A stretch of 61,932 bases of DNA, the filler included, from Choristocarpus tenellus KU-1152 (Eukaryota; Protista; Phaeophyceae): assembly GCA_964200185.2 (NCBI GenBank). It is 13 parts of 13 records of this genome, joined end to end, with 100 filler letters (N's around TTAATTAATTAA, not from the genome) between each part and the next. Parts side by side here need not be neighbours in the genome. Positions count along the whole stretch, not along the records: positions 47,855 to 55,028 come from CAXNAD020006580.1; 12 more parts are not named here. One strand, 5' to 3'. The position numbers and the translations under genes were made by a program. The notes under the pieces were generated by a model. It worked only from the letters and a program-made list of their open reading frames with translations. It was not told the origin of the DNA and searched no databases. Shown piece after piece: positions 1,940 to 55,028 of this stretch (positions are counted from its first letter, which is position 1; each line of letters opens with the position of its first letter).

Positions 1940-4215
1940 AACACAACTGGGGAGCACAGACTAGTTTGTCGTTGGCATACCCAGTGGCATAGAGCGATTC
2001 CAACTAAGCATTCACCTAAGCCATGAATGTGGAAATTGGGTCTTGAGTCTTGATGGGAAGAATACAGCAACGATGTGCGTTAGGGTACCTTTATTGAGGC
2101 CCTACCAGAGGTCCTCCCAGGGCCCTTCCAACGCATGGTAAAGGTGTATGGAGCCTTGCCAGTCTACTCTTCTCCTTGGATGAAAGGGGGGGGAGGTAAT
2201 CCTAGATAATGTGGGTCAGCAGCACAACAAGGTGATCCTATAGGCCTCGTCCTATTCTGTCTTGAACACTTCTGCAGAACTGAAGAGCCTCCAGACAACT
2301 TTTGGTCCCCAACCTGGGGGTCTCGTCACATACTATTGGACGATTCATCGCTCTCCAACTGAGGTTTAAGGCCATAGTCATAGGAGGATTCCAACAAGGT
2401 AGAACTGCAGTTGGTGGGCGTTCACCTCGATATGGAAAATATGTGTGTGTCACCTCCTTATCATATTTACCCTCTGCAGTAAGAGCTGGAACTCCTGGTC
2501 ACGTTGGGAATCAACCTTGCCTCAGACACAGTGACTTTGCGGACTTAGGTGCACCTACAGACAAGGATGCCTTCATCCAAGCCCATATGACAGGAGCAAC
2601 GGAGCGAATAAGATCACAGAAGTTAGACATATATCTCAGTGATATGGATGGTAAAGGAAGTAGCATGGCTCTGCAATGCCTGGTTCCTCCTTTCGTCTCT
2701 TCAAGCTGTGGGTTATTCCACCACGATCATTAAATATGAAGGATGGAGAATTAAAAAAAAGTATGGCTAAAGGGTGTAACTTTCCAGGTCATGCTGATCA
2801 AAAAAGTTTTCACAAACGAAGATGGATCAACTGGTATTATATACCTTGCTTCTAATGACATAGAACATGAATCTGACTATTTGTATCAAATCTATCAAAA
2901 ACGGTGGAGCATTGAGGAGTATCATAAATCTATAAAGGAGAATGCAAGCTTGGCTAAATCTCCAACAAAAAGGGACGACTTTGCTGAAAAAAATCCATCA
3001 TGCAGCAGGCGGATAACACTTTATTGTGGACACTTAAGAGGACCATGGAGGGGGCAAACTTGACTGCGGCAAAAGGAATTGTTCAAAGGAGGGTGCGAAA
3101 ATATAGGTCTCTTCACTTGGAGACACACCAGCAGGTCCAAGCTCAGTTATCAACTAATACAGTAGGCCTAGGCCTACCCTCCATGACCCATCGCCAACAT
3201 GCAGCGTTTGTAGGATTGTTAGTAGTCATCCTCTCTACCCTCTTAGCAAGACAGTAAGGGATTTCTGGCAAGGAATTAGCTGTGGTCATCTGCTTCAGCC
3301 CTGTCATGTAGGCTCTGTGTGGATCAATGCACACAATACGATATGCTAGAGTCCTACAGATGAACTTGCTGCAATCATCGGTCAAGTCTGGATAAAGTAT
3401 GGGGTGGTATAGCACCTCCTGTGCAAGCCCCCAAAGTCACTTCTTGGCAGCGCATGATGCAGGAGGGACACATACCAATACGGACCCAGCATGAGATCAC
3501 CTTTCTTAAAAAACGTTTTCGCTTAGACTCCTTCCACATCCAGGTGGGAAAATTCCATGTGGATTCAATACCTGAAAGGAAATCTCCTGCTACAGCCTTA
3601 GCATATCAAAGGATTCGGTGTGAGCAAGGGGCTAATGTGTGGACAATTACCCAACCTTCAAACCACCAAGGTGGATCCCATCCCCAGCATCCAACCTCAC
3701 ATTCAACTGGCCCTTTCAGGGAAGAGGTTGCATTGTCCAACCACAGTCCTGTTGATGGATAATGCAGAAGACAGAGAGTGGATACTAGGCACAATACAGA
3801 TGCACTAGAGCTACTAGAGGACAAGTGTTTAGTAGGACATATCTATGGTCAGGCAACTGGACAGTGTCTGGAGTCGGATGGGCATCCCTTGCACCCTTGA
3901 GGGTAACATTCCCTTTACTGTAGACCGGGATTCCTTTATGGACGAAATATTACATATTGGTTGGCCACTTTCCAACGTACTCACTGCCCCCAACCAGGAA
4001 AAATATATCCTCATCGATGTGGCCTTCACAGAGGTCCAAGCGGTCAACTATTTACAACACTTGTCTACAAACAACAGCATCACCTACGCTTGCAGCTGGG
4101 CCCAGGAAGTGCAACCACTGCAAGGAATGTATGTACCTTTGTATTTTTAACCTCAACACCTCACAATGGAGAGCTTGAGGTGTATTGGTATGCAAGTAGA
4201 GCAATTGATGGATGA
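1940..4215 (+). mobile_element. Degenerate non-LTR retrotransposon (CRE-like, RT plus restriction-like endonuclease region)
   Basis: Broken frames encode FVVGIPSGIE, QQGDPIGLVLFCL (~2222-2265, RT motif), a frameshifted Y-LDD (~2332-2345), QAQLSTNTVGLGLPS...AAFVG and YILIDVAF. Many stops and frameshifts. Confidence 0.65.
2727..2972 (+). mobile_element. Bacterial IS701-like (IS4 superfamily) DDE transposase fragment inside the LINE remnant
   Basis: AT-rich patch encoding VWLKGVTFQVMLIKKVFTNEDGSTGIIYLASND...YQKRWSIEEYHKSIKENASLAKSPTK, which contains the Y-2-R-3-E-6-K motif. One poly-A frameshift near 2760. Confidence 0.75.
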
Positions 4216-4527
4216 GCTGGTGACTCGTGTAGTGGGTGATAGGGAGACCGGGAGTTTAGCAAGAAGGGAGCAGTAATGACTTGTAGTCTGTCTCAGGACT
4301 AGTGGCAGTGATTTCAATGCGCATCACGTGTTTCAAGATAAAGTCAAAGGACTGACGGGTGAGACAAGGCTTGATATACTTGTGGGACTCTTTCCTTGTT
4401 TCGAGATCACCTTCATTTTTCATCTCCATACAGTGACTGTGGTGGACGAATTGTTGGATTGAAAGGTCCTAACTGCTCTATTTTACACAAAGAATCTAGT
4501 GGTCACCATTCTATACGTCTTCCAACA

Positions 4528-5048
4528 GAGTGAAAGTATAGAGGGTACGAATTTTGCCCTGTTTGTTCATTTGGGGCTTGGCTTCTCACGTTTTTTTAAT
4601 GACATTTTCTTACTCAAAAATGTTTCGGAGTAGGTCAAATGTATACGTTATGAAAAGGTGTGTTCGGAACAAGGATATTGGAGTCGAAGTATCTTAGAAG
4701 GTAGAGCCGCGTCCATTCGGGGGCCAAAACCCAATGTTGCGATTTTGATGAAATTTTGACTATCGTGTTTGTTAGGAATTGTCAATATCCTTGTTCGGAC
4801 ACACCTTTATATTATGCATATATTTTACCTACTCCGAAATGTTTCACAGTAGATAAAATATCATAAAAAAAAACTGTGGGAAGCCAAGTCCCAAATGGAC
4901 AAACAGGGCAAAATTCGTACCCTCTAAGATACTTTCGCTCATTGACGCTTCCTAACAAACACGATAGCTAAAATTACATCAAAATCGCAACATTTTGGAT
5001 TGTGGCCCCCAAATGGACGCTACTTTACCATCTAAGATATTTTGATTC
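4528..5048 (+). mobile_element. MITE family A copy with a second family A copy nested in inverted orientation (4681-4940)
   Basis: Outer copy is split at AAGGATATTG|ACACTTCC (intact at ~30231-30250). Inner copy GAGTC...CGCTC is flanked by duplicated ATTG. Confidence 0.88.
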
Positions 5049-5443
5049 GCCAGAAGATCATTATGGAACTATGAAAGATTACTCCAGTTGTATAACCGAC
5101 CTGTATAGTCTGGGTTACCCTACCCACTGGTTTCAAGTAGTATTGTGTCCTACATAGTGTTAGTATGTAGGAAGTAGAAAGGTCAGCCACTGTGCTCCCT
5201 GGCAGCAAAAGGGTCTCCTCCTGGTCGTGAGCTTTGCTGAAGTCCAAGCGAACTTCGGTGTAGAAGAATCTTAACCAAACAATTGTATTGTTGCTGCTGC
5301 ACCTGAGCCATGAAAGCATATTTCTACAAAAGAGTCTTTTACCCTTGTAGCTTTTAACCTCGATACCTTCACGGTGGAGAGCCTTGGCAACTTAACTCAC
5401 AGGCAGAGCAATTCCTGGATGAGGTGGCGAATCGCATAAGTGT

Positions 5444-5685
5444 GAGTAACCAACCGAGAGGTAGGCAAGGTCGCATTTTAAGGATCGCGGGAAAGGGTAA
5501 AAATATCCCATTTTGCACAATTGCAGATACAGTCTTTGCTTAATTGTGGCATCACTTTGTGTGTGAAAAAGGGGAAAATCAATTTTGCTTACACTGTTGC
5601 ACACGAAAAGTCTGGCACAGGGTGAGAAAGATTGGTTAGAATGCAAAAGGGTGCAAATTTGCCTACCTCCCGATTGGTTTGACTC
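5444..5685 (+). mobile_element. MITE family C (other copies ~7221-7350 partial, ~59072-59329 reverse)
   Basis: TIRs GAGT-AACCAACCGAGAGGTAGGCA / TGCCTACCTCCCGATTGGTTTGACTC with a TGT target duplication on both sides. Confidence 0.8.
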
Positions 5686-8600
5686 TGTGTGGTAGGGGAG
5701 CTGGAGTTTCAGTAGGACGGGTGCACACACTGGACAGAGAATTATTTGATTTGTTTGTGCTTCACAAAACAGCAGGGAAAAAGTGTGCACACATATTTGT
5801 GTGTGGAATTTGAAGGAGTGGAGAAGTTGTACAAATCATTTCTATTGAGGATCTTGTACCACAAATGACGTACAAGAAAAACTGTATGTCGAGGAATGAT
5901 GTGTGCAAATCCCGATTTGTCGATAAAACCTTGTCGGCTATACATGGTTTGTAGATATCGTTCGTCACTTTATCGGTTGTGTTAATTATCTCTGTATACA
6001 TCAAAAGAAGATAGCTGTGTATCACTGATCTGTTCATACCTCATCTGGACATACAACTCGTACCTCGTACCTTTACTGGAAAGGACAATCCTGTACAAAT
6101 CTTACATTGTGATTTCAGAGGAACATTCGTGTACGAATCTCACACTGTGATTTAGAAGGGAAGAAAAATCGTGTACAAATCTGACGTTATATTATATTTT
6201 TTCGTATATCAGTGGTCAGTGTTCACATTTTCAGTACTTTAATTCTTTTTGATTTTTATACCCCTCTATCATTTTGCTTTTGTGTGAAGGAAAAACCAAA
6301 CCTAAATTTCGCATATCGGTACCACCACTCCTGTGTTCATAACATGCACAAATACTTGTCAGTACGACTCATCCTCCGCGAAGCGTGTGTATTTATCGTA
6401 CCACTCCCCCCCCTATCTATGAAATGTGGAGCTGTCAAATCCTGTTCACGACAGATAGTGTCGGTCACAACACAAGTGACTCTATTAAGACGTGTTATGC
6501 GTTTAAGCTGGAGACACCAGGGAGATAGGCAAGCAGGGGCCTGTCACATGTTTAGGATGCTTCCCTAGCTCCTCGTCCTGTGGTGCAGGGCTAAACTAGG
6601 TTGGAGGCATAGTAGGGGGGTGGTGTAGTATACCTGGTAGCCAGTAAAATGGATTTTGGAGAGATACCTTTCACATTCACGACAACTAATACTTTATAGG
6701 GGTCCTTATGATACTGGATTGTCTTTTTCCCTGACACATCTGCAAGATGTCAGAGGGCATAATAATATAAACGTGTACAACTATTTGTACGTATCACTCT
6801 CCTATCTACAAAAAATGTACAAACGATTCGCTGGTAAAAATGAACTGATTCAAATCCCTCCACTATGATTTGCCTTCGTAACCTCAAGTTGTACAGATCA
6901 CAATGTGTTGATTGTCAACATCTCATCATATTGTCCAATTATAGTTATCCCACACCACTCTCAGAAATACTAATTAGTAGAAATGATTGGGATACACATA
7001 TGGAAGAGACAAAAATCCTACATTTTTCTTGTGAGGATGTGGTGTTACAGGTAGCAGGTCTTAATGGCGGTTTCATAAACGCCATTATGACCCTGAAGTC
7101 CTAGATTTTATTTGTTGTACTTCTTGACTACTTCGTTTCTTATCGTTTAGTCATTATGAGACCATTTATTGCCCCTGTCATGTTTGTGTCTGTTCTCTCT
7201 ATATACCTCAATCAAATAATGAACCAAGCCAATTGAGAGGTAGGCAGGGCTGTATTTTAAGGATCTCGAGAAAGGGCAAAAATAAATTGTTTTGTTTAAT
7301 TACAGAGAGAGGCTTTGCTTGATTGTGGTGCCACTTCATGCGTGTAAATACGTTATTGCGTAGATAATAAAGTGAAATACAGAGTATTGCATGGGATAAG
7401 AATTATGGGTTAAAATGCAGAGGTTTCAGGGTCAACGTATCTGGGGGGGGGGTGGGCGTCCGTTTTTTAACCTTTTTTCCATTTCCACTTTTTGGTGTGA
7501 TTTGGTCGCACGTGTCGGCTTTGAAATTTCAGCAAAAAAAAGAAGACTGCTGGTTAGGTTCTTTCCTGTCCTTGCGTACGCAAGTGGAATGGGAACATAT
7601 GCCACCATTTATTTGGGTTTGGTTAGGAGCTTCGACGTTTGCATGTGTCGGATTTCGAGTCTGTTCAAACTGGATTATTGGTTTATGTATGTTGGTCGTG
7701 CAATTACGATGAAGAATAAGAGATATAGGTTAGGTTGTTCCAGGGCTGGATATTGGTTTGTTTGGTTGTATGAGTGGGATTTGGTTAGCACATAAAGAGG
7801 GCTGTCGGTTAGGGTGTGTTTTCCCACTGATAGGACGAGGAATTGAAAAAAAGACTATGGGCTGTTGCGAGGTTGCTTTTTTCGTTTATTTGCTTGCATG
7901 AGCCGTGTCTGGTACGTACACAAAGAGGAATGCCAGTTTGGGCCTGTTCTCCCGGTGTGTGCACGAGGAACCAAAATATATATCATGTACAATTTAAATG
8001 TAATACTTTGTTTATTTGCATGCATGTGTTGGATTTAGTATGTAAACAGACGTGGTTGTCACTGAGGGTGTTAGGGTTGAAGTTGTTGGTATAAAGGAAG
8101 GGAAAACGGTCAGGTTTTGTTTTCGGGTTAGTGTCTTATATCTCTCATGTAAGGTGTGGACGCAATCTGGAGGTGTATACGAGTGGTTATTGGTCAAGGT
8201 CTATTGTCGTACGTTTCTCTGAAAGTAGTTCAAGGTACACTTCCAGAGGTCCTGGGTTGGTGCTGTGCTTAGGAGCATTGTGCGTGGAGTTCGGTATATG
8301 ATCCTCCAAGATTCGAAGGAGGACGAGATCGGTTCTAGTTTGTCGACACTTGGAGAAAGCATAAGATGGTGCATAGAGTATTGAGAAGAAGGGGCGAGGT
8401 ACGTTATAGTGTTCAAGGAATAAATAGCGGCTTTGAGAAGGACAGGGTATCCATCGCAGGCCCTGGTCAATTGTTTGGAAAGGTTAGCTGAGAAGATGGA
8501 GAAGGGTTATTTGAACGATGTATTATATTTTAGTTGTCTAAACCTTGTAACAGACACGCTATTTTAAACAAATAATAACACAGGTCTAATCCTCAACGTG

Positions 8601-47754: not shown

Positions 47755-49465
47755 NNNNNNNNNNNNNNNNNNNNNNNNNNNNNNNNNNNNNNNNNNNNTT
47801 AATTAATTAANNNNNNNNNNNNNNNNNNNNNNNNNNNNNNNNNNNNNNNNNNNNAAGATAGAGTATTCCACATGACAGCAGGAATGTACCCTCCGTCTGG
47901 TTAAGTTCAACCGCATCCTGCGAATCATCAAAAAGGTTATCAAATTGCATCACGGGCAAAGCAAAAAATTAGACAAAAAAATATGTAAGCACTTGGCATT
48001 GTCTGACCTTTCAGTATATGGTTTCAAAAGGTTATCCAAAACCTTTTTTGTATTTCAGGAGTTACACCATATAACCTTACGGTCTATGTGGTATCCCTAT
48101 TAGGTTATTCACTTGACTAGTAATGGTAACAATACACCAACCAGTCCCCAACAAGAAAAACTGAAAAAAAGTATAAAATAACCCACTTCATCCAAACACA
48201 AAGTGAAATCAAGTATAGAAAGCCTGAAATGCATGCATAGCAACAACTCCAGAAGGGACAAACCGAAAGTCAGAAACAGGTGAAATGAATCTCCAATATC
48301 CACTGCAGACGTGATACAGTCAACTCCTTTTAATTTTACTTTGCACCAAACAAATTCACCACTGCAACAATATCAAGCCTTCCTTAAAATCAAAATATGC
48401 CATCATTCTACAAAACCCTCTCGTTATTTAATAACTAAATGTACCCCTGGTCTGGATGAACTCAATGGAATCAAAAAATCAGGACACACTTCACACACTT
48501 GTCATGGACCTACAAAATAAAAATAAATTGGAGAACTTGCAACATGAAAGTCAGAAGTACTAAGTAAACCAACCCAAATTCCTTGAAAGGTTGCAAAATC
48601 AATCTTTGTGACATTGTTAAAACACAAATCCTACCCAATCTCAACATTAATGTTTCGTAAGCATGGAAATCCAGTAAACCAACTTTAACACCACTTTCCA
48701 CTATGACAACTCATTTGCACAAAAATTAAATATAGCAGTAGCAAGCCTTCCTTAATGACACAATATACCATCATTCTACTAAATTCCATCTTGGTACTTA
48801 TCTCTTACCTTTCTCAAGAAGATAACATCAGTAAGCTATTCATGAAAGGGAAAGTACGAGAAGTTCCACAAAAGTTTAGAAATAGATCTAGTGATGTCTC
48901 ACGAGGTATAATTTTTTCAATATCAACATTAAAGGTTGTAACCCCTATAGAGGGTTTATACTTATAGAACCTGTACAACAGATACATTCAAACATTACAG
49001 GAAAGTAGATGTCGCATTGCACTGCCAACACAACAGTTTCGCCTTGTTTGACATGCTAGTATTTCTTACAGAGAGTATCCTCATATCAACATGCAATTAC
49101 CTCAAGTAAAAATTTCGGGGATCAAAAGTTTGGAGGGTAGAAACAGAATTGACTAACTCTCCATTTAATCCATATAATTTCAACAGTGCATCGTGTCAAA
49201 TACCATTCAACAATTACCCTCACACTCTCCTCCATTTTCACAATATCTTAGCTCTCTGCCCGATTTGGAAATCAACATTCTGAGATATTCCAATTGGACA
49301 ACAAGATCAAAAATAAAATAATATCAATGTCATCTCATTATTTGTAGAATCCTTAATGGACACGTGGTTGGTAAGAAATATACCTAACAGTACAATAATC
49401 AATTAATATAAATACATAATATGTTGGATTGAAGGGTAGGTTCTCTTTCATAACAAATTAACTGT

Positions 49466-49640
49466 ACCGAAAAAAATATAGAATCTTCCAAGACATATAT
49501 TAACCCTAACCCTGACCCTTACCCTATACCGAAAAGATATATAGATTCTTCCAAGACATATATTAACCCTAACCCTATACCGAAAAGATACATAGAATCT
49601 TCCAAGACATATATTAACTCTAACCCTAACCCAAACCCTA
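49466..49640. repeat. Minisatellite (~50-60-bp unit x3) containing CCCTAA telomeric motifs
   Basis: TACCGAAAAGATATATAGAATCTTCCAAGACATATATTAACCCTAACCC repeated three times, just inside the intron after the Roc exon. Confidence 0.85.
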
Positions 49641-49746
49641 TATATATATATATATCTTACGCTAAGAGTAGTTTATCCTTAGGAAAAGTTAGAAATCAAA
49701 ACAAAATTCACCATACATAGTAACCATAACAGAAACGGTTGCATAC

Positions 49747-50822
49747 CTTAAAAATTGCAGTGACAGCAGCATCTTCTGCATCACCCTCCCAGTTTCCCTC
49801 CTTCCAGATACCTTTCCATTTCCCAACAGCATCCTCCAAATGCAAATACGGCAACATCGTTTGACCTTCACCCTTGGCATGTGACACCTCACCCGGCTTG
49901 AGTGCTGCCATCAAGGGGTTCAACCCATCACGTAGGGCAAACATCACAGCAGATACCCTTGCCCATCCCATTGGGATAACCTTACCAATAGTGGGAAACA
50001 AGCGAGTTCCATCTGGACCAGGTCTAACTCCATGCATCACAAGCTCCACAGTCTTCTTTCGAACAGCATCCATCCTTTCTCCTCCTGACCGACACGATAC
50101 AGCCATCACTCCTAAGATATAAAGATCCGCAGGTGGTTGAACCTCCTTCATGACTTCCACACCCAACTCCTTCTGCCGCTTAGAAAAGATCATGTCCATC
50201 TCATCACGCTTGACTTTCAAGTGTTTACCAATCAAAAGATCAAGCTTCTTCATCGCACAGTCAACCTCATCGTCACCCTTCATACAGTCAATATGCGTCC
50301 CAACAACCAAAACAGACGAACCAGGCACCTTGCACAGCAGCAGATCAAGCCAGCTGTAGACAAGCTTACCTCCTTCTGACTCTTCATGATAGAATTTGTT
50401 GAGGTCAACCACAAGAAGGTTCAAGGCGCCCATAGTAAGAAAAAATGGACACATGGAGTCGTACTCCTTGTGTGCGCCAAAGTCCCACATCATCAATTCT
50501 AGCAGCTCTTCACCATTCGGCTTCCAGGAGTGTACATCCACTCCACGAGTGTGATCTTCAAGAGTGGTCAAATAGGGCCGTCCATCCAACATACTCCGGG
50601 CAAGGCTGGTCTTGCCTGCACAAACCTCGCCAACAAGAACCACCTTCAGCCTGTGAGACTTAGTCAACCCAGAGAGTTCAACAGCCTCATAATATTGAAT
50701 AATTGCCTCCAAACCACCCTCCACAACCTCTGCTGGAGAACTAACCCATCGGTTACGAAAAAAACTATGGTCTTCCAAATGAATGCATGACCTAAGCCGT
50801 AGTGCTGCCTCCTTCGAGAAAA
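49747..50822 (-). CDS. ROCO LRR-GTPase, Roc and start-of-COR exon
   Basis: Bounded by ATCAG| and AAG|GTATGC. Encodes PAEVVEGGLEAI, LKVVLVGEVCAGKTSL (G1), TRGVDV (G2), WDFGAH (G3), LLVVDL and VVGTHID (G4). Confidence 0.93.
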
Positions 50823-51567
50823 CTGATATGAAAAAAGTAAAATAGAACCGACATGGAAGGAAGAGACATTAAGAGTTAGATTAAAGATTATAAAGTAATG
50901 ACCCAAACAAAGAGTTATAAAAGAACTACCACCAAATTCAACATCTTGCCAACTTCATATACTACATAATACTTTACTTGACTGCAGAAATATTATCAGT
51001 AGCCAGCATCACTGACAAAATATTGTCCAACTTCGAAATTACCACAAATACCAATCAGGAATGAATTGATAAAGCATGCAAAACGAAAAACAAATCTATT
51101 CTTACAATCACAAATTCTCAATCACCTTCTATCCTCAGATTAACCAAACATCTTCAACCAACCTATCCACAACAACGTCATACACAAACAAGAGCAAAAA
51201 GAGGGACCTACCACAAAACAAAATACCTCAACTACCCTGCCCTGACTAATACAACCACAACTAATATGCCTACACTCTTGTCCACGACAAACATCACCTC
51301 CAGGTACACAACAACCCTCATGCGCACTATATACATCACTCTCCTGTCAAAACATATAATTGTCACACTAATCAATATCAAACCAACCATGGTCTTGCTC
51401 TAGTACTGATACGAAATTGGATTCAATCATCTCCATATTGCACCAGTCCAATATTCTTAGGGCACATATCAAAAATATACATTTTTGACCACACTAGGGT
51501 ACTTCAACAGGAAACCAAAAAAAAGGAGATACCTTCAAATTCAACAAATACCCAACTTCACAATTAC

Positions 51568-51639
51568 CGCTTAATTTATTGTTTCCCAAATCTAGCCACG
51601 TGAGAGCAGAGAGATTCCCCAGTGACTCCGGGATGCTCC
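51568..51639 (-). CDS. ROCO 72-bp LRR exon R4: GSIPESLGNLSALTWLDLGNNKLS
   Basis: CAG|...|GTAA boundaries, phase 1-1, one 24-aa plant-type LRR. Confidence 0.93.
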
Positions 51640-52211
51640 CTGTGAGGAAAAGAGTTCATTTGTGAATGCCATTCAGTTTTCACAATACACAAACATTAGT
51701 CAAAAGTGGGGTGACAAAGCAGGCAAAACGAAAAACAAATCTATTCTTACAATCACAAATCTTAATCACCTTCTATCCTCAGACTAACTAAACATCTTCA
51801 ACCAACCTATCGACAACAACGCCATACACAAACAAGAGCAAAAAGAGGGACCTACCACGAAACAAAGTACCTCCTTAACTATCCTGTCCTGACTAATACA
51901 ACCACAACTAATATGCCTACACTCTTGTCCACTACAAACATCACCTCCAGGTACACAACAACCCTCATGCGCACTATATACATCACTCTCCTGTCAACAC
52001 ATCTATTGTCACACTAATCAATATCAAACCAATCATGGTCTTGCTCTAGTACTGATACGAAATTGGATTCAATCATCTCTATATTGCACCAGTCCAACAA
52101 TCTCAGTACACACAACAAAAATATACATTCTTGACCACACTAGGGTACTTCAACAGAAAACCAAAAAAAAAAATACCTTCAAATTCAACAAATGTCCAAC
52201 TTCACACTCAC

Positions 52212-52283
52212 CACTGACTTCATTGTTCTTCAAATATAGGTGCGTGAGAGAAGAGAGATTCCCCAGTGACTCCGGGATGCTCC
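52212..52283 (-). CDS. ROCO 72-bp LRR exon R3: GSIPESLGNLSSLTHLYLKNNEVS
   Basis: CAG|...|GTGAG boundaries, phase 1-1. Confidence 0.93.
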
Positions 52284-52850
52284 CTGTGAGGAAAAGAATT
52301 GATTTACGAAAGCCATTCAGGTTTCACAATACACACACAACATTTAGTCAAAAGTGGGGTGACAAAGCATGCAAAACGAAAAACAAATCTATTCTTACAA
52401 TCACAATTCTTAATCACCTTCTATCCTCAGACTAACCAAACATCTTCAACCAACCTAGACACAACAACGCCATACACAAACGAGAGCAAAAAGAGGCACC
52501 TACCACAAAACAAAATACCTCCTCAACTATACTGACCTGACTAATACAACCACAACCAATATGCCTACACTCTTCTCCCCCACAACATCACCTCCAGGTA
52601 CCCTCATGCGCACTACATGCATCACTCTCCTCTAAACACAGCTAATTCTAACACTAATCAATATCGATCTAACTATGGCCTTGATATATTACTGATACAA
52701 AATTGGATTATATCATTTATATACTGATCCAGTCCAACATTCCAAGGGCACACATCAAAAATATACATTCTTGACATCACTAGGGTCCCTCAACAGGAAA
52801 ACAAAGAGGAGATACCTTCAAATTCAACAAATATACAACTTCACACTTAC

Positions 52851-52922
52851 CGCTTAGCTGATTGGAAGATAAATTGAGCCGAGTGAGAGCAGAGAGATTC
52901 CCCAATGACTCCGGTATTGGTC
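52851..52922 (-). CDS. ROCO 72-bp LRR exon R2: GPIPESLGNLSALTRLNLSSNQLS
   Basis: CAG|...|GTAAG boundaries, phase 1-1. Confidence 0.93.
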
Positions 52923-53495
52923 CTGTGTGGAAAAGAGATGATTTACGAAAGTCATTCAGGTTTCACAATACACAAACAACCATTAGTCAAAAGTGGGGTG
53001 ACAAAGCATGCAAAACGAAAAACACATCTATTCTTACAATCACAATTCTTAATCACCTTCTATCCTCAGACTAACTAAACATCTTCAACCAACCTATCCA
53101 CAACAACATCATACACAAACAAGAGCAAAAAGAGGGACCTACCACAAAACAAATATCTCAACTACCCTGCCCTGAATAATACAACCACAACTAATATGCC
53201 TACATTCTTGTCCACGACAAACATCACCTCCAGGTACACAACCCTCATGCGCACTACATACATCACTCTTCTGTCAAAACATATAATTGTCACACTAATC
53301 AATATCAAACTAACCATCATCTTGCTCTAGTACCGATACGAAATTGGATTCAATCATCTCTATATTGCACCAGTCCAACATTCTCAGGGCACACATCAAA
53401 AATCTACATCTTTGACCACACCAGGGTCCTTCAAAAGGAAAACAAACAAAAAGGAGATACCTTCAAATTCAACAAATGTACAACTTCACACTTAC

Positions 53496-53567
53496 CGCTC
53501 AGCTTATTGAAAGACAAATCTAGTTCCGTAAGACCACAGAGACTCCCCAGTGACTCCGGGATTTGTC
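53496..53567 (-). CDS. ROCO 72-bp LRR exon R1: xQIPESLGSLCGLTELDLSFNKLS
   Basis: CAG|...|GTAAG boundaries, phase 1-1. Confidence 0.93.
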
Positions 53568-54942
53568 CTGTGAGGAAAAGAGTTGATTTCCAAATGCCAT
53601 TCAGGTTTCACAATACACACAAACAACCATTAGTCAAAAGTGGGGTGACAAAGCATGCAAAACGAAAAACACATCTATTCTTACAATCACAAATTCTCAA
53701 TCACCTTCTATCCTCAGACTAACTAATCATCTTCAACCAACCTATACACAACAACGCCATTGACAAGGTAACCTATCCACACTAATCAATATTAACCTAA
53801 CCACAATGATGGTGCTAATCACCAGTATAGATGCACTACGCGGTTATGGTGTGGTTAGCATTATACCATAGCAATAGAATATTATCTCCTGGCAAGATGT
53901 GTAGTTGTGCTGTTTATACATAAACCCTTTAATATGAAAGAAAGGCAAAAGATTGAGAAAATTGAAGCGCCATATTCTAGGTGTTCCCTTTGAATTTGTA
54001 GAACTTAGATAACGAAAACCTTTTTTGTTTATCTTCTATGCCTTATTTTTTGGAGCACACAAAGTAAAACTGGCATCGAACATGCACTCTTTGCAACATT
54101 CTGTTGAAAGTTTATGATATGTGTTTCTCTTACAGGAATTAAAAAACACTGAGAAATTCGAGGAACAGAAGATTTTATCAGGTGAGAAACAAAAAATTCA
54201 CATGATAACGATCATTAACAGCATTATCTTGTGCAAGGGAAAGGAGTCGCACCTACTAAAACATGTGTTCCACAATTGATAATATAGGAGCATTGTATAA
54301 AACTTTGAACAAAATTTCAATCTAATGTATAAATGAAAGCCTGAAAGTGGATTTCGTGAGGTAGATGTCAAAACTAAGACACACAACACATCACAACAAC
54401 AAAAAGTGCAGTTCTCACACAGCTTCACGGTGGTACAGGTTTGTGTACTCCGCTGCAACATGCCGTACAATATAGCTTATGTGCAGTCTTTCCTAACGAG
54501 AATCCGCAAATTAAACCTGGAATGGCGAGCTCTGGCGTCATCAGACAAATCAATTTTCTCTCACTTCGAAAAGTGGTCTAGCTGATGTGTTGCCTTACAA
54601 GTGTTAACACACGCTGCATCCATGACCTCCAAAATCGACAGAAGTTAAGTACCATCTCATGTAGACATATCTTCGTACCAACAATAACGTGCAAAAAAAC
54701 TTGACCAATACGATGTGATTCTCATGTCACAGTCAACGGTCCATGTGTCAATATACATGCACGAATGTTCAGTGTAAACTCGTTGATATTCACATCTGTA
54801 CAATACATCCACGAGCGAGTCAATAACATTGCGCCCATTGATACATACATCAAATATACGAAGCCAACCATACAAGAAGCCACCTATAAATGGACATTCG
54901 ACACACAAATTTGGAATGTAAAACACGGCTGTCAAATCTTAC

Positions 54943-55028
54943 TATTGAGGTTGTTCTCGGGGAGGTTGATCTTCACAACGTACCCTTCCTTCATCGTAGA
55001 CTTCAATCCCGTACCACGTTGACAGATC
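54943..55028 (-). CDS. ROCO N-terminal LRR-cap exon (partial, apparent frameshift)
   Basis: DLSTWYGIEVYDEGRV in one frame and VVKINLPENNLN-A|GTAAG in the next; phase-1 donor. Confidence 0.75.

Follow-up and report, generated by a model that had tools for sequence, protein, structure and literature searches.

Concerted evolution and diversifying selection as probable shapers of a tandem LRR exon array in a ROCO gene of the brown alga Choristocarpus tenellus

The LRR exon arrays of an LRR-Roc gene subfamily in Choristocarpus tenellus have probably been shaped by concerted evolution, through unequal crossover and gene conversion, together with diversifying selection. The array on which this reading is based lies in a window of 61,932 nucleotides (the whole stretch of DNA analysed, filler included), assembled from 13 parts of the genome assembly GCA_964200185.2. 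Sequence identity establishes that positions 47855–55028 are the entire contig CAXNAD020006580.1. An LRR-Roc gene occupies the minus strand of this contig, with both gene ends lying beyond it, and reads from the end of an N-terminal exon through four 72-nt LRR exons and a Roc exon to the start of a further exon (Table 1).

Table 1. Coordinates of the LRR-Roc gene features, counted along the window.
Feature	Position	Strand	Basis or remark
N-terminal exon (LRRNT-like cap and first strand), 3' part, cut by contig edge	54943..55028	minus	Paralogue comparison
First intron	53568..54942	minus	Last ~200 nt (from 53766) already repeat unit
Tandem array, ~640-bp exon+intron units, about 4.2 units	51067..53766	minus	Unit alignment
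Type I LRR exon 1, 72 nt, phase 1-1	53496..53567	minus	Variable codons 14–19 at 53509–53526 (face E, D, S, F)
Unit intron, 573 nt	52923..53495	minus	Run X3 has a matching splice joint
Type I LRR exon 2, 72 nt, phase 1-1	52851..52922	minus	Variable codons at 52864–52881 (R, N, S, S)
Unit intron, 567 nt, most divergent of the four	52284..52850	minus	Unit alignment
Type I LRR exon 3, 72 nt, phase 1-1	52212..52283	minus	Variable codons at 52225–52242 (H, Y, K, N)
Unit intron, 572 nt	51640..52211	minus	Unit alignment
Type I LRR exon 4, 72 nt, phase 1-1	51568..51639	minus	Variable codons at 51581–51598 (W, D, G, N)
Last array intron, 745 nt	50823..51567	minus	Unit sequence to 51067, then unique; spliced joint 50822–51568, run X3
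Large exon, 1076 nt: capping LRR, Roc GTPase and COR-position region	49747..50822	minus	Open frame
Next exon start, cut by contig edge	47855..47917	minus	Homologous to C-terminal region of paralogues

Sequence comparisons assign the window gene to the brown-algal type I LRR-ROCO family, in agreement with the initial annotation. The Roc domain downstream of the array covers the full Pfam model (PF08477, E 1e-13), and a family profile run against the PDB gives LRRK2 and prokaryotic Roco proteins as its best matches. The closest named matches are from Choristocarpus (63–90%), followed by those from the brown algae Ectocarpus and Laminaria (36–37%). The region after Roc, inside which the contig stops, is homologous to an Ectocarpus ROCO (E 8e-44). 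The Pfam COR model has no match in the paralogous C-termini or in one Ectocarpus ROCO; among 111 brown-algal ROCOs, COR has been detected in only 18 (PMC11378527). Of the predicted G motifs, the P-loop and G4 are present, and the switch II DxxG glycine is an alanine in three aligned Choristocarpus proteins; relative to other brown algae, the G and A of the Choristocarpus Roc switch II are swapped. Choristocarpus is placed in the Discosporangiales, the earliest-diverging brown-algal order, by recent papers (PMC13280774, PMC12396294), unlike the NCBI taxonomy entry, which lists the species under Sphacelariales.

The initial annotation described four 72-bp, phase 1-1 LRR exons in ~640-bp units with highly similar introns, and a beta-strand segment that differs from unit to unit, all of which is borne out by the alignment. 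The four exons (AG-72 nt-GT, minus strand) recur at a unit spacing of 639–648 bp, the three internal introns (573, 567 and 572 nt) are 86–93% identical, and the translations agree with a distinct strand in each unit. Tandem Repeats Finder is blind to the array, whose period is above 500, and reported only a telomere-like repeat. Two other candidate features were rejected: the segment 54319–55028, considered as a dispersed repeat, comprises the N-terminal exon with its intron, and two inverted repeats extending from the acceptor to mid-intron, considered as docking or recombination signals, are only 70% complementary.

Divergence among the window units is concentrated within the exons, whose second halves differ pairwise by 29–47%, compared with 6–13% for the introns. 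The face positions 14, 16, 18 and 19 (of 23 whole codons) were fixed beforehand from PMC3341825 and PMC11378527, and the test of these codons is not post hoc because the positions were taken from earlier published work. Between window units the face codons differ at p = 0.60 versus 0.06–0.11 in the introns, consistent with the earlier by-eye impression that the coding segment is the more divergent. Columns with at least three states make up 7 of 12 at the face and 5 of 553 in the intron (Fisher p 2e-10), and the peak is unmatched elsewhere in the unit, since the best 18-nt intron window scores 9 and codons 14–19 score 18. The first ~12 codons had been called nearly invariant, a description that holds only in part: codon 1 varies as much as the face codons do, and codons 2–12 diverge at the DNA level by 0.11, about as much as the introns.

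The same exon+intron unit is found at 83–94% identity in four paralogous contigs, L001, L002, L005 and L011, which carry 5, 3, at least 1 and 7 unit exons, respectively. Thus, the unit is not unique to the window locus, and its number varies among paralogues from 1 to 7, as expected from the cassette gain and loss that the initial annotation had proposed; none of the testable observations that it had listed as speaking against its reading was made. In L003, an older paralogue with 63% protein identity, there are six such exons whose introns are only 66–80% alike, indicating that unit-intron homology decays with age. RNA contigs contain further exon variants absent from the fetched paralogue contigs. 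In three runs, single intron contigs have ~30–40 times the depth of unique stretches, which hints at tens of units in the genome, depth not being copy number. The gene count is a minimum because the assembly is fragmented. Every exon is symmetric, the splice sites are nearly identical, and the arrays have a common 3' border and 5' borders that vary between genes. Some paralogues are damaged, with dead donors in L002 and L011 and frameshifts in L002 and L005.

The excess of amino-acid change was measured against the introns, a comparison of per-site divergence and dN/dS that the initial annotation had called for. The rate test used 20 units from five paralogous contigs, a fixed intron tree and rates scaled to the intron rate. 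At the face codons the non-synonymous rate is ~13 times and the synonymous rate ~1.4 times that of the introns, giving an approximate omega of ~10 (LRT p ~1e-4). Silent sites evolve at ~4.6 times the intron rate in the 3' half of the exon and ~1.5 times in the 5' half, and fourfold sites of the 3' half stand at 0.32, compared with 0.06–0.14 in Roc. Both omega and the silent-site excess are rough, because recombination violates the assumption of a single tree and inflates rates upon it; plain pairwise distances give the same contrast between face and intron. The sample is small (23 codons, 20 units) and its pairs are not independent. Eighteen distinct faces occur among the 20 units. The structural residues P3, L6, G7, L9, L12, L15 and N20 show little or no variation, and none of the 20 LRR exons contains a stop codon. 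At codons 16 and 19, variation lies in the first and second positions and hardly touches the third. Because codon 16 is always NNT and codon 19 mostly NNC, a DGR-like adenine mutagenesis was considered and set aside: the adjacent AAT codon does not vary, codons 14 and 18 change at every position, and selection would be expected to yield silent third positions.

The initial annotation viewed the unit introns as conserved homology arms, and this idea is not supported. Between the same paralogues the unit introns differ by 8–11%, unique introns by 5–17% (23% for one 5' intron) and fourfold Roc sites by 6–14%. The unit introns are thus not conserved beyond their age, and the most conserved 25-nt intron windows are marginal (p ~0.04). 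The proposed recombination among units fared better, as the introns are mosaic. Among informative intron site pairs 38% are incompatible, the proportion going from 27% for close pairs to 42% for distant ones (p ~0.01 in a PHI-like permutation test), and identical runs of 70–105 nt connect units from different genes. The intron tree clusters units by gene (6 changes versus 11.4 for shuffled labels), with a small gap between intron differences within a gene (10.0%) and between genes (10.7%). Face codons and exon 3' codons fall randomly on this tree, and the same codon patches recur across different genes; convergent substitution could account for some of the shared codons.

These observations suggest a model for how the arrays evolve. 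Each LRR corresponds to one symmetric 72-nt exon in a ~640-bp unit of a young LRR-Roc subfamily. Because the exons are symmetric, crossover between misaligned units could add or remove whole repeats in frame and create chimeric units. Through unequal crossover and gene conversion, chiefly among units of one gene and occasionally between paralogues, the introns and framework codons would stay alike, while selection on the concave-face codons would fix new residues and shield a short patch from being overwritten. Together these processes would account for the sharp peak of divergence within each exon. The introns would serve as the substrate of recombination because the repeats are young, and not because they are dedicated arms. 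The time scale of this process is likely evolutionary rather than one of programmed somatic change.

Diversity might instead arise mainly at the RNA level, by combinatorial in-frame skipping of exons with identical splice sites, as viewed for Ectocarpus (PMC11378527); as the principal source in Choristocarpus, we regard this as quite unlikely. The read evidence consists of short contigs from four runs of one study, with likeness set to 88. Exons were searched one by one, and short junctions between them were joined only to check the reading frame and for comparison with the read tables. Run X3 behaves as RNA, with GT-AG joints at the exon 1–2, exon 3–4 and exon 4–Roc introns; given the likeness setting, these joints attest to splicing of the family and not of this locus, and the exon 3–4 joint is one base off the window sequence. 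The symmetric exons with near-identical splice sites would permit skipping, splice variants have been reported for Ectocarpus ROCO genes (PMC11378527), and one RNA junction fits in-frame skipping of the third exon of L011, whose donor is dead. However, the junctions that can be assigned exactly, exon 2–3 and exon 3–4 of L001, are consecutive, each with a depth of 153. In the window gene, an apparent exon 2–4 joint is indistinguishable from exon 2–3, the first 32 nt being the same in exons 3 and 4. Accordingly, of the in-frame skipping put forward in the initial annotation, the case of the donor-dead L011 exon is indicated and that of the window gene is ambiguous. The exon 2–4 joints and others that appear to go back were rejected as skipping or scrambling, exon 5' halves being common across paralogues at a likeness of 88. 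Skipping alone also leaves the face-codon selection and the turnover of units unexplained, but it can coexist with concerted evolution.

A second alternative is that cassettes are exchanged somatically in a programmed fashion, with introns kept as homology arms and thalli rearranging during life, a hypothesis advanced in PMC3341825. There are many closely similar donor units (20 were fetched, and the deep intron contigs roughly hint at more), the units are mosaic, mitotic rearrangement of repeats is documented for analogous fungal genes (PMC2873952), and what look like site-specific crossover sites are present in one kelp ROCO gene. Nonetheless, this hypothesis appears very doubtful for Choristocarpus, given introns that are no more constrained than neutral DNA, with best 25-nt windows that are only marginal. 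No inverted repeat of at least 9 bp and no 13-mer in both orientations was found in the arrays of L004, L001 and L011; the seven Choristocarpus contigs contain no antisense (inverted) LRR exon and no fixed or common crossover site, array borders being variable. Very frequent exchange of full units is further disfavoured by the distance of 6–12% between neighbouring units. No near-identical pair was found among the units fetched. A related and broader proposition, that Choristocarpus arrays rearrange mitotically, diversify receptors within a clonal thallus and represent an ancestral, homology-driven stage that preceded site-specific exon inversion in kelp, as hinted at by the Laminaria locus L007 described below, we consider unlikely.

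The state of the window copy bears on a third alternative. The initial annotation listed no N-terminal exon; one is present at the contig end and is frameshifted. A 4-nt duplication within 54985–54992 shifts the frame and leads to a stop at the first splice junction. It also occurs in L002, which makes an assembly error unlikely, whereas L001 and the inverted copy in L002 lack it, the N-terminal exon being whole in both L001 and L002. Read contigs lacking the duplication occur in two runs. The window copy is thus probably a frameshifted member of the subfamily, and we think it rather likely that it is a pseudogene; an ATG just upstream of the duplication, in frame with the LRRs, makes a cap-less product possible. 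High gene death is known in Ectocarpus ROCOs as well (PMC3341825). This frameshift, together with the dead donors and frameshifts of the paralogues, could be taken as signs that a decaying pseudogene family has been duplicating neutrally in tandem, with relaxed constraint or a mutation hotspot behind the variable patch. Such an account is highly improbable. Relaxation cannot give face codons that evolve far faster than introns, and omega above 1 at sites predicted beforehand largely refutes it; the near-invariant structural residues, the freedom from stop codons, the almost fixed third positions of codons 16 and 19, and the transcription and splicing of the family speak against it as well. Finally, an assembly artefact of collapsed or chimeric repeats is scarcely credible, although the assembly is fragmented and no single read contig covers the whole array, in view of units that are 6–12% apart with distinct exons, unique flanks matched exactly by contigs from several runs, and a layout and 3' border shared by the paralogues.

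L007, a ROCO contig of Laminaria digitata that served as a control, is organized differently. Across 4 kb it carries 7 LRR exons in sense and 10 in antisense orientation, with a ~48-bp quasi-palindromic site in almost every inter-exon gap and on both flanks; one gap has only a degenerate copy. Each site is composed of two arms flanking an 8-bp spacer that has a GC at its centre, and the halves occur in all combinations. The 8-nt word at the ends of the arms is present 27 times in the array and 0 times in the remaining 6.5 kb. Among related cassettes, similarity often begins or ends within a few bases of the central GC, in both orientations. The arrangement at this one locus suggests shufflon-like, site-specific inversion sites; a relic of a palindromic transposon is an alternative. 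The closest Ectocarpus gene has neither such sites nor antisense exons, a scan of metagenome contigs returned one unrelated chance match without LRR exons, and an incomplete literature search found no published description of such sites. The Laminaria sites do not apply to the window gene, and bear instead on the open mechanism of shuffling.

How, and how fast, brown algae shuffle ROCO LRR exons has been an open question since 2012. The Choristocarpus subfamily extends the design of one exon per LRR, together with the same four selected sites, to the earliest-branching brown-algal order, and plain homologous recombination suffices to explain its pattern. The unit introns provide a neutral clock and SNP barcodes with which crossover points, conversion tracts and mitotic rates could be measured in clonal culture. 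The Laminaria locus is potentially more important than the Choristocarpus array: should its sites prove to be true crossover points, a shufflon-like mechanism for immune-type receptors could be tested in a eukaryote. Judging from their family, the Choristocarpus proteins may function in pathogen or non-self recognition and are candidate receptors. We know of no ligand for any brown-algal ROCO. An immune role for brown-algal ROCOs has not been directly demonstrated, according to PMC3341825 and PMC11378527.

Several known systems invite comparison. Interchangeable LRR or exon cassettes generate binding diversity in lamprey VLR assembly, Dscam exon arrays and bacterial shufflons. The Choristocarpus loci differ from lamprey VLR in having no incomplete germline gene flanked by donor cassettes, from Dscam in giving no sign of mutually exclusive splicing, and from shufflons in having no recombinase sites. 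The WD40 repeats of the Podospora anserina HNWD/NWD genes (het-d, het-e, het-r) form, to our knowledge, uninterrupted coding DNA that lacks a conserved intron per unit. They undergo concerted evolution, and their mitotic instability has been shown (PMC1805685, PMC2873952). As in Choristocarpus, units are exchanged within and between paralogues, repeat number varies, and four surface codons are under diversifying selection. The two systems work alike and are unrelated, the one combining WD40 repeats with a STAND ATPase and the other LRRs with a Roc GTPase; moreover, it is in Podospora that mitotic instability and function are demonstrated. A divergence peak under gene conversion is also known from the primate red and green opsins (reviewed in PMC3924837), in which introns are likewise homogenised and divergence, silent sites included, is centred on selected codons. 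The silent-site peak in the 3' half of the Choristocarpus exons is thus expected where conversion homogenises the flanks and selection keeps a patch different (PMC3924837). The opsins are two genes with fixed differences, whereas Choristocarpus has many intragenic units with many alternative residues.

The nearest comparison is with the published brown-algal LRR-ROCOs, which share with Choristocarpus the N-terminal cap exon, one symmetric 72-nt exon per LRR, the GxIP..L consensus and Roc, as well as many pseudogenes and dead cassettes, inter-locus exchange and selection on sites 14, 16, 18 and 19, reported for Ectocarpus (PMC3341825) and for four species (PMC11378527). The exon design, the selected sites and the inter-locus exchange are therefore already published for Ectocarpus and kelp. 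Neither of those studies sampled the Discosporangiales, and in the Choristocarpus genome paper ROCO appears only as an expanded family. In contrast to the Ectocarpus and other loci fetched, the Choristocarpus units are regular and head-to-tail, with full-length intron homology of 86–94%; intron-to-intron homology is absent from L008 and L010 (Ectocarpus and a relative) and limited to patches in L007. Antisense LRR exons, which occur in 19 Ectocarpus ROCO loci and are not universal there, are absent from the seven Choristocarpus contigs. What Choristocarpus adds to the known systems is the earliest-branching order, a homogenised tandem form with intron homology along the full length of the unit, and a measurement of selection calibrated on introns.

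A 48-bp-scale repeat accompanies the LRR exons of the Laminaria digitata ROCO contig L007, which carries 72-nt exons on both strands. Each copy is a quasi-palindromic site of ~48 bp, composed of two arms, an 8-bp spacer and a central GC, and such sites occupy both flanks of the array and almost all of the gaps between exons. Their halves are hybrid, with every combination present, and the homology between related cassettes often breaks off within a few bases of the central GC. Judged from the sequence of this one locus, the array resembles a site-specific inversion system of the shufflon type. A literature search of incomplete coverage returned no description of sites of this type, and we regard the site array as a high-priority lead.

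Coordinates of exon, repeat and array features in Choristocarpus tenellus (the window; contigs L002 and L011) and Laminaria digitata (L007).
Feature	Location	Context	Details
ROCO LRR array	L007:3160-7390 (CAXNAO020007449.1)	Laminaria digitata	both strands; 72-nt exons, 7 sense and 10 antisense
LRR exon with dead donor	L011:6245-6316		TT for GT
Telomere-like (TAACCC) tandem repeat	window 49465-49642	post-Roc intron	51-63-bp repeat
Short telomere-like insertion	L002 ~8340	frameshifted start of L002 Roc exon	

A possible rearrangement is seen in the Choristocarpus paralogue L002, where a 2.5-kb inverted copy (3946-6427) of the 5′ end of an L001/L011-type gene, comprising the N-terminal exon and first intron at 93-94% identity, sits inside the array following a donor-dead exon; this could reflect nested rearrangement or, alternatively, a chimeric assembly. 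The telomere-like insertion in the same contig is possibly a break-repair scar. In the window gene, a 4-nt duplication in the N-terminal exon (54985-54992), shared with L002 (2344 region), shifts the frame to a stop at the first junction and places an upstream ATG at 54994 in frame with the LRRs.

Transcript evidence bears on two exons. An RNA junction is consistent with in-frame skipping of the donor-dead exon of paralogue L011, and a paralogue RNA contig indicates an apparent cryptic acceptor at window 50741-50742, 82 nt into the Roc exon, use of which would shift the frame and yield an LRR-only product. Paralogues differ in both the length and the sequence of the capping LRR with which this exon opens (window 50740-50822 and its L001 and L002 equivalents), even though this LRR is unrepeated; in L001 it carries an 18-nt insertion.

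Each LRR exon begins with a hypervariable 5-nt patch (for example, window 53563-53567) that spans the split glycine codon and the following codon and is flanked by an acceptor and a framework that are both invariant; the selected sites reported for Ectocarpus and kelp ROCO genes exclude this patch. Switch II of the Roc domain (near window 50480) departs from its relatives: the three aligned Choristocarpus proteins (window, L001 and the older paralogue L003) have G and A swapped and read DxGA where other brown-algal ROCOs and LRRK2 have DxAG; their GTPase behaviour may differ.
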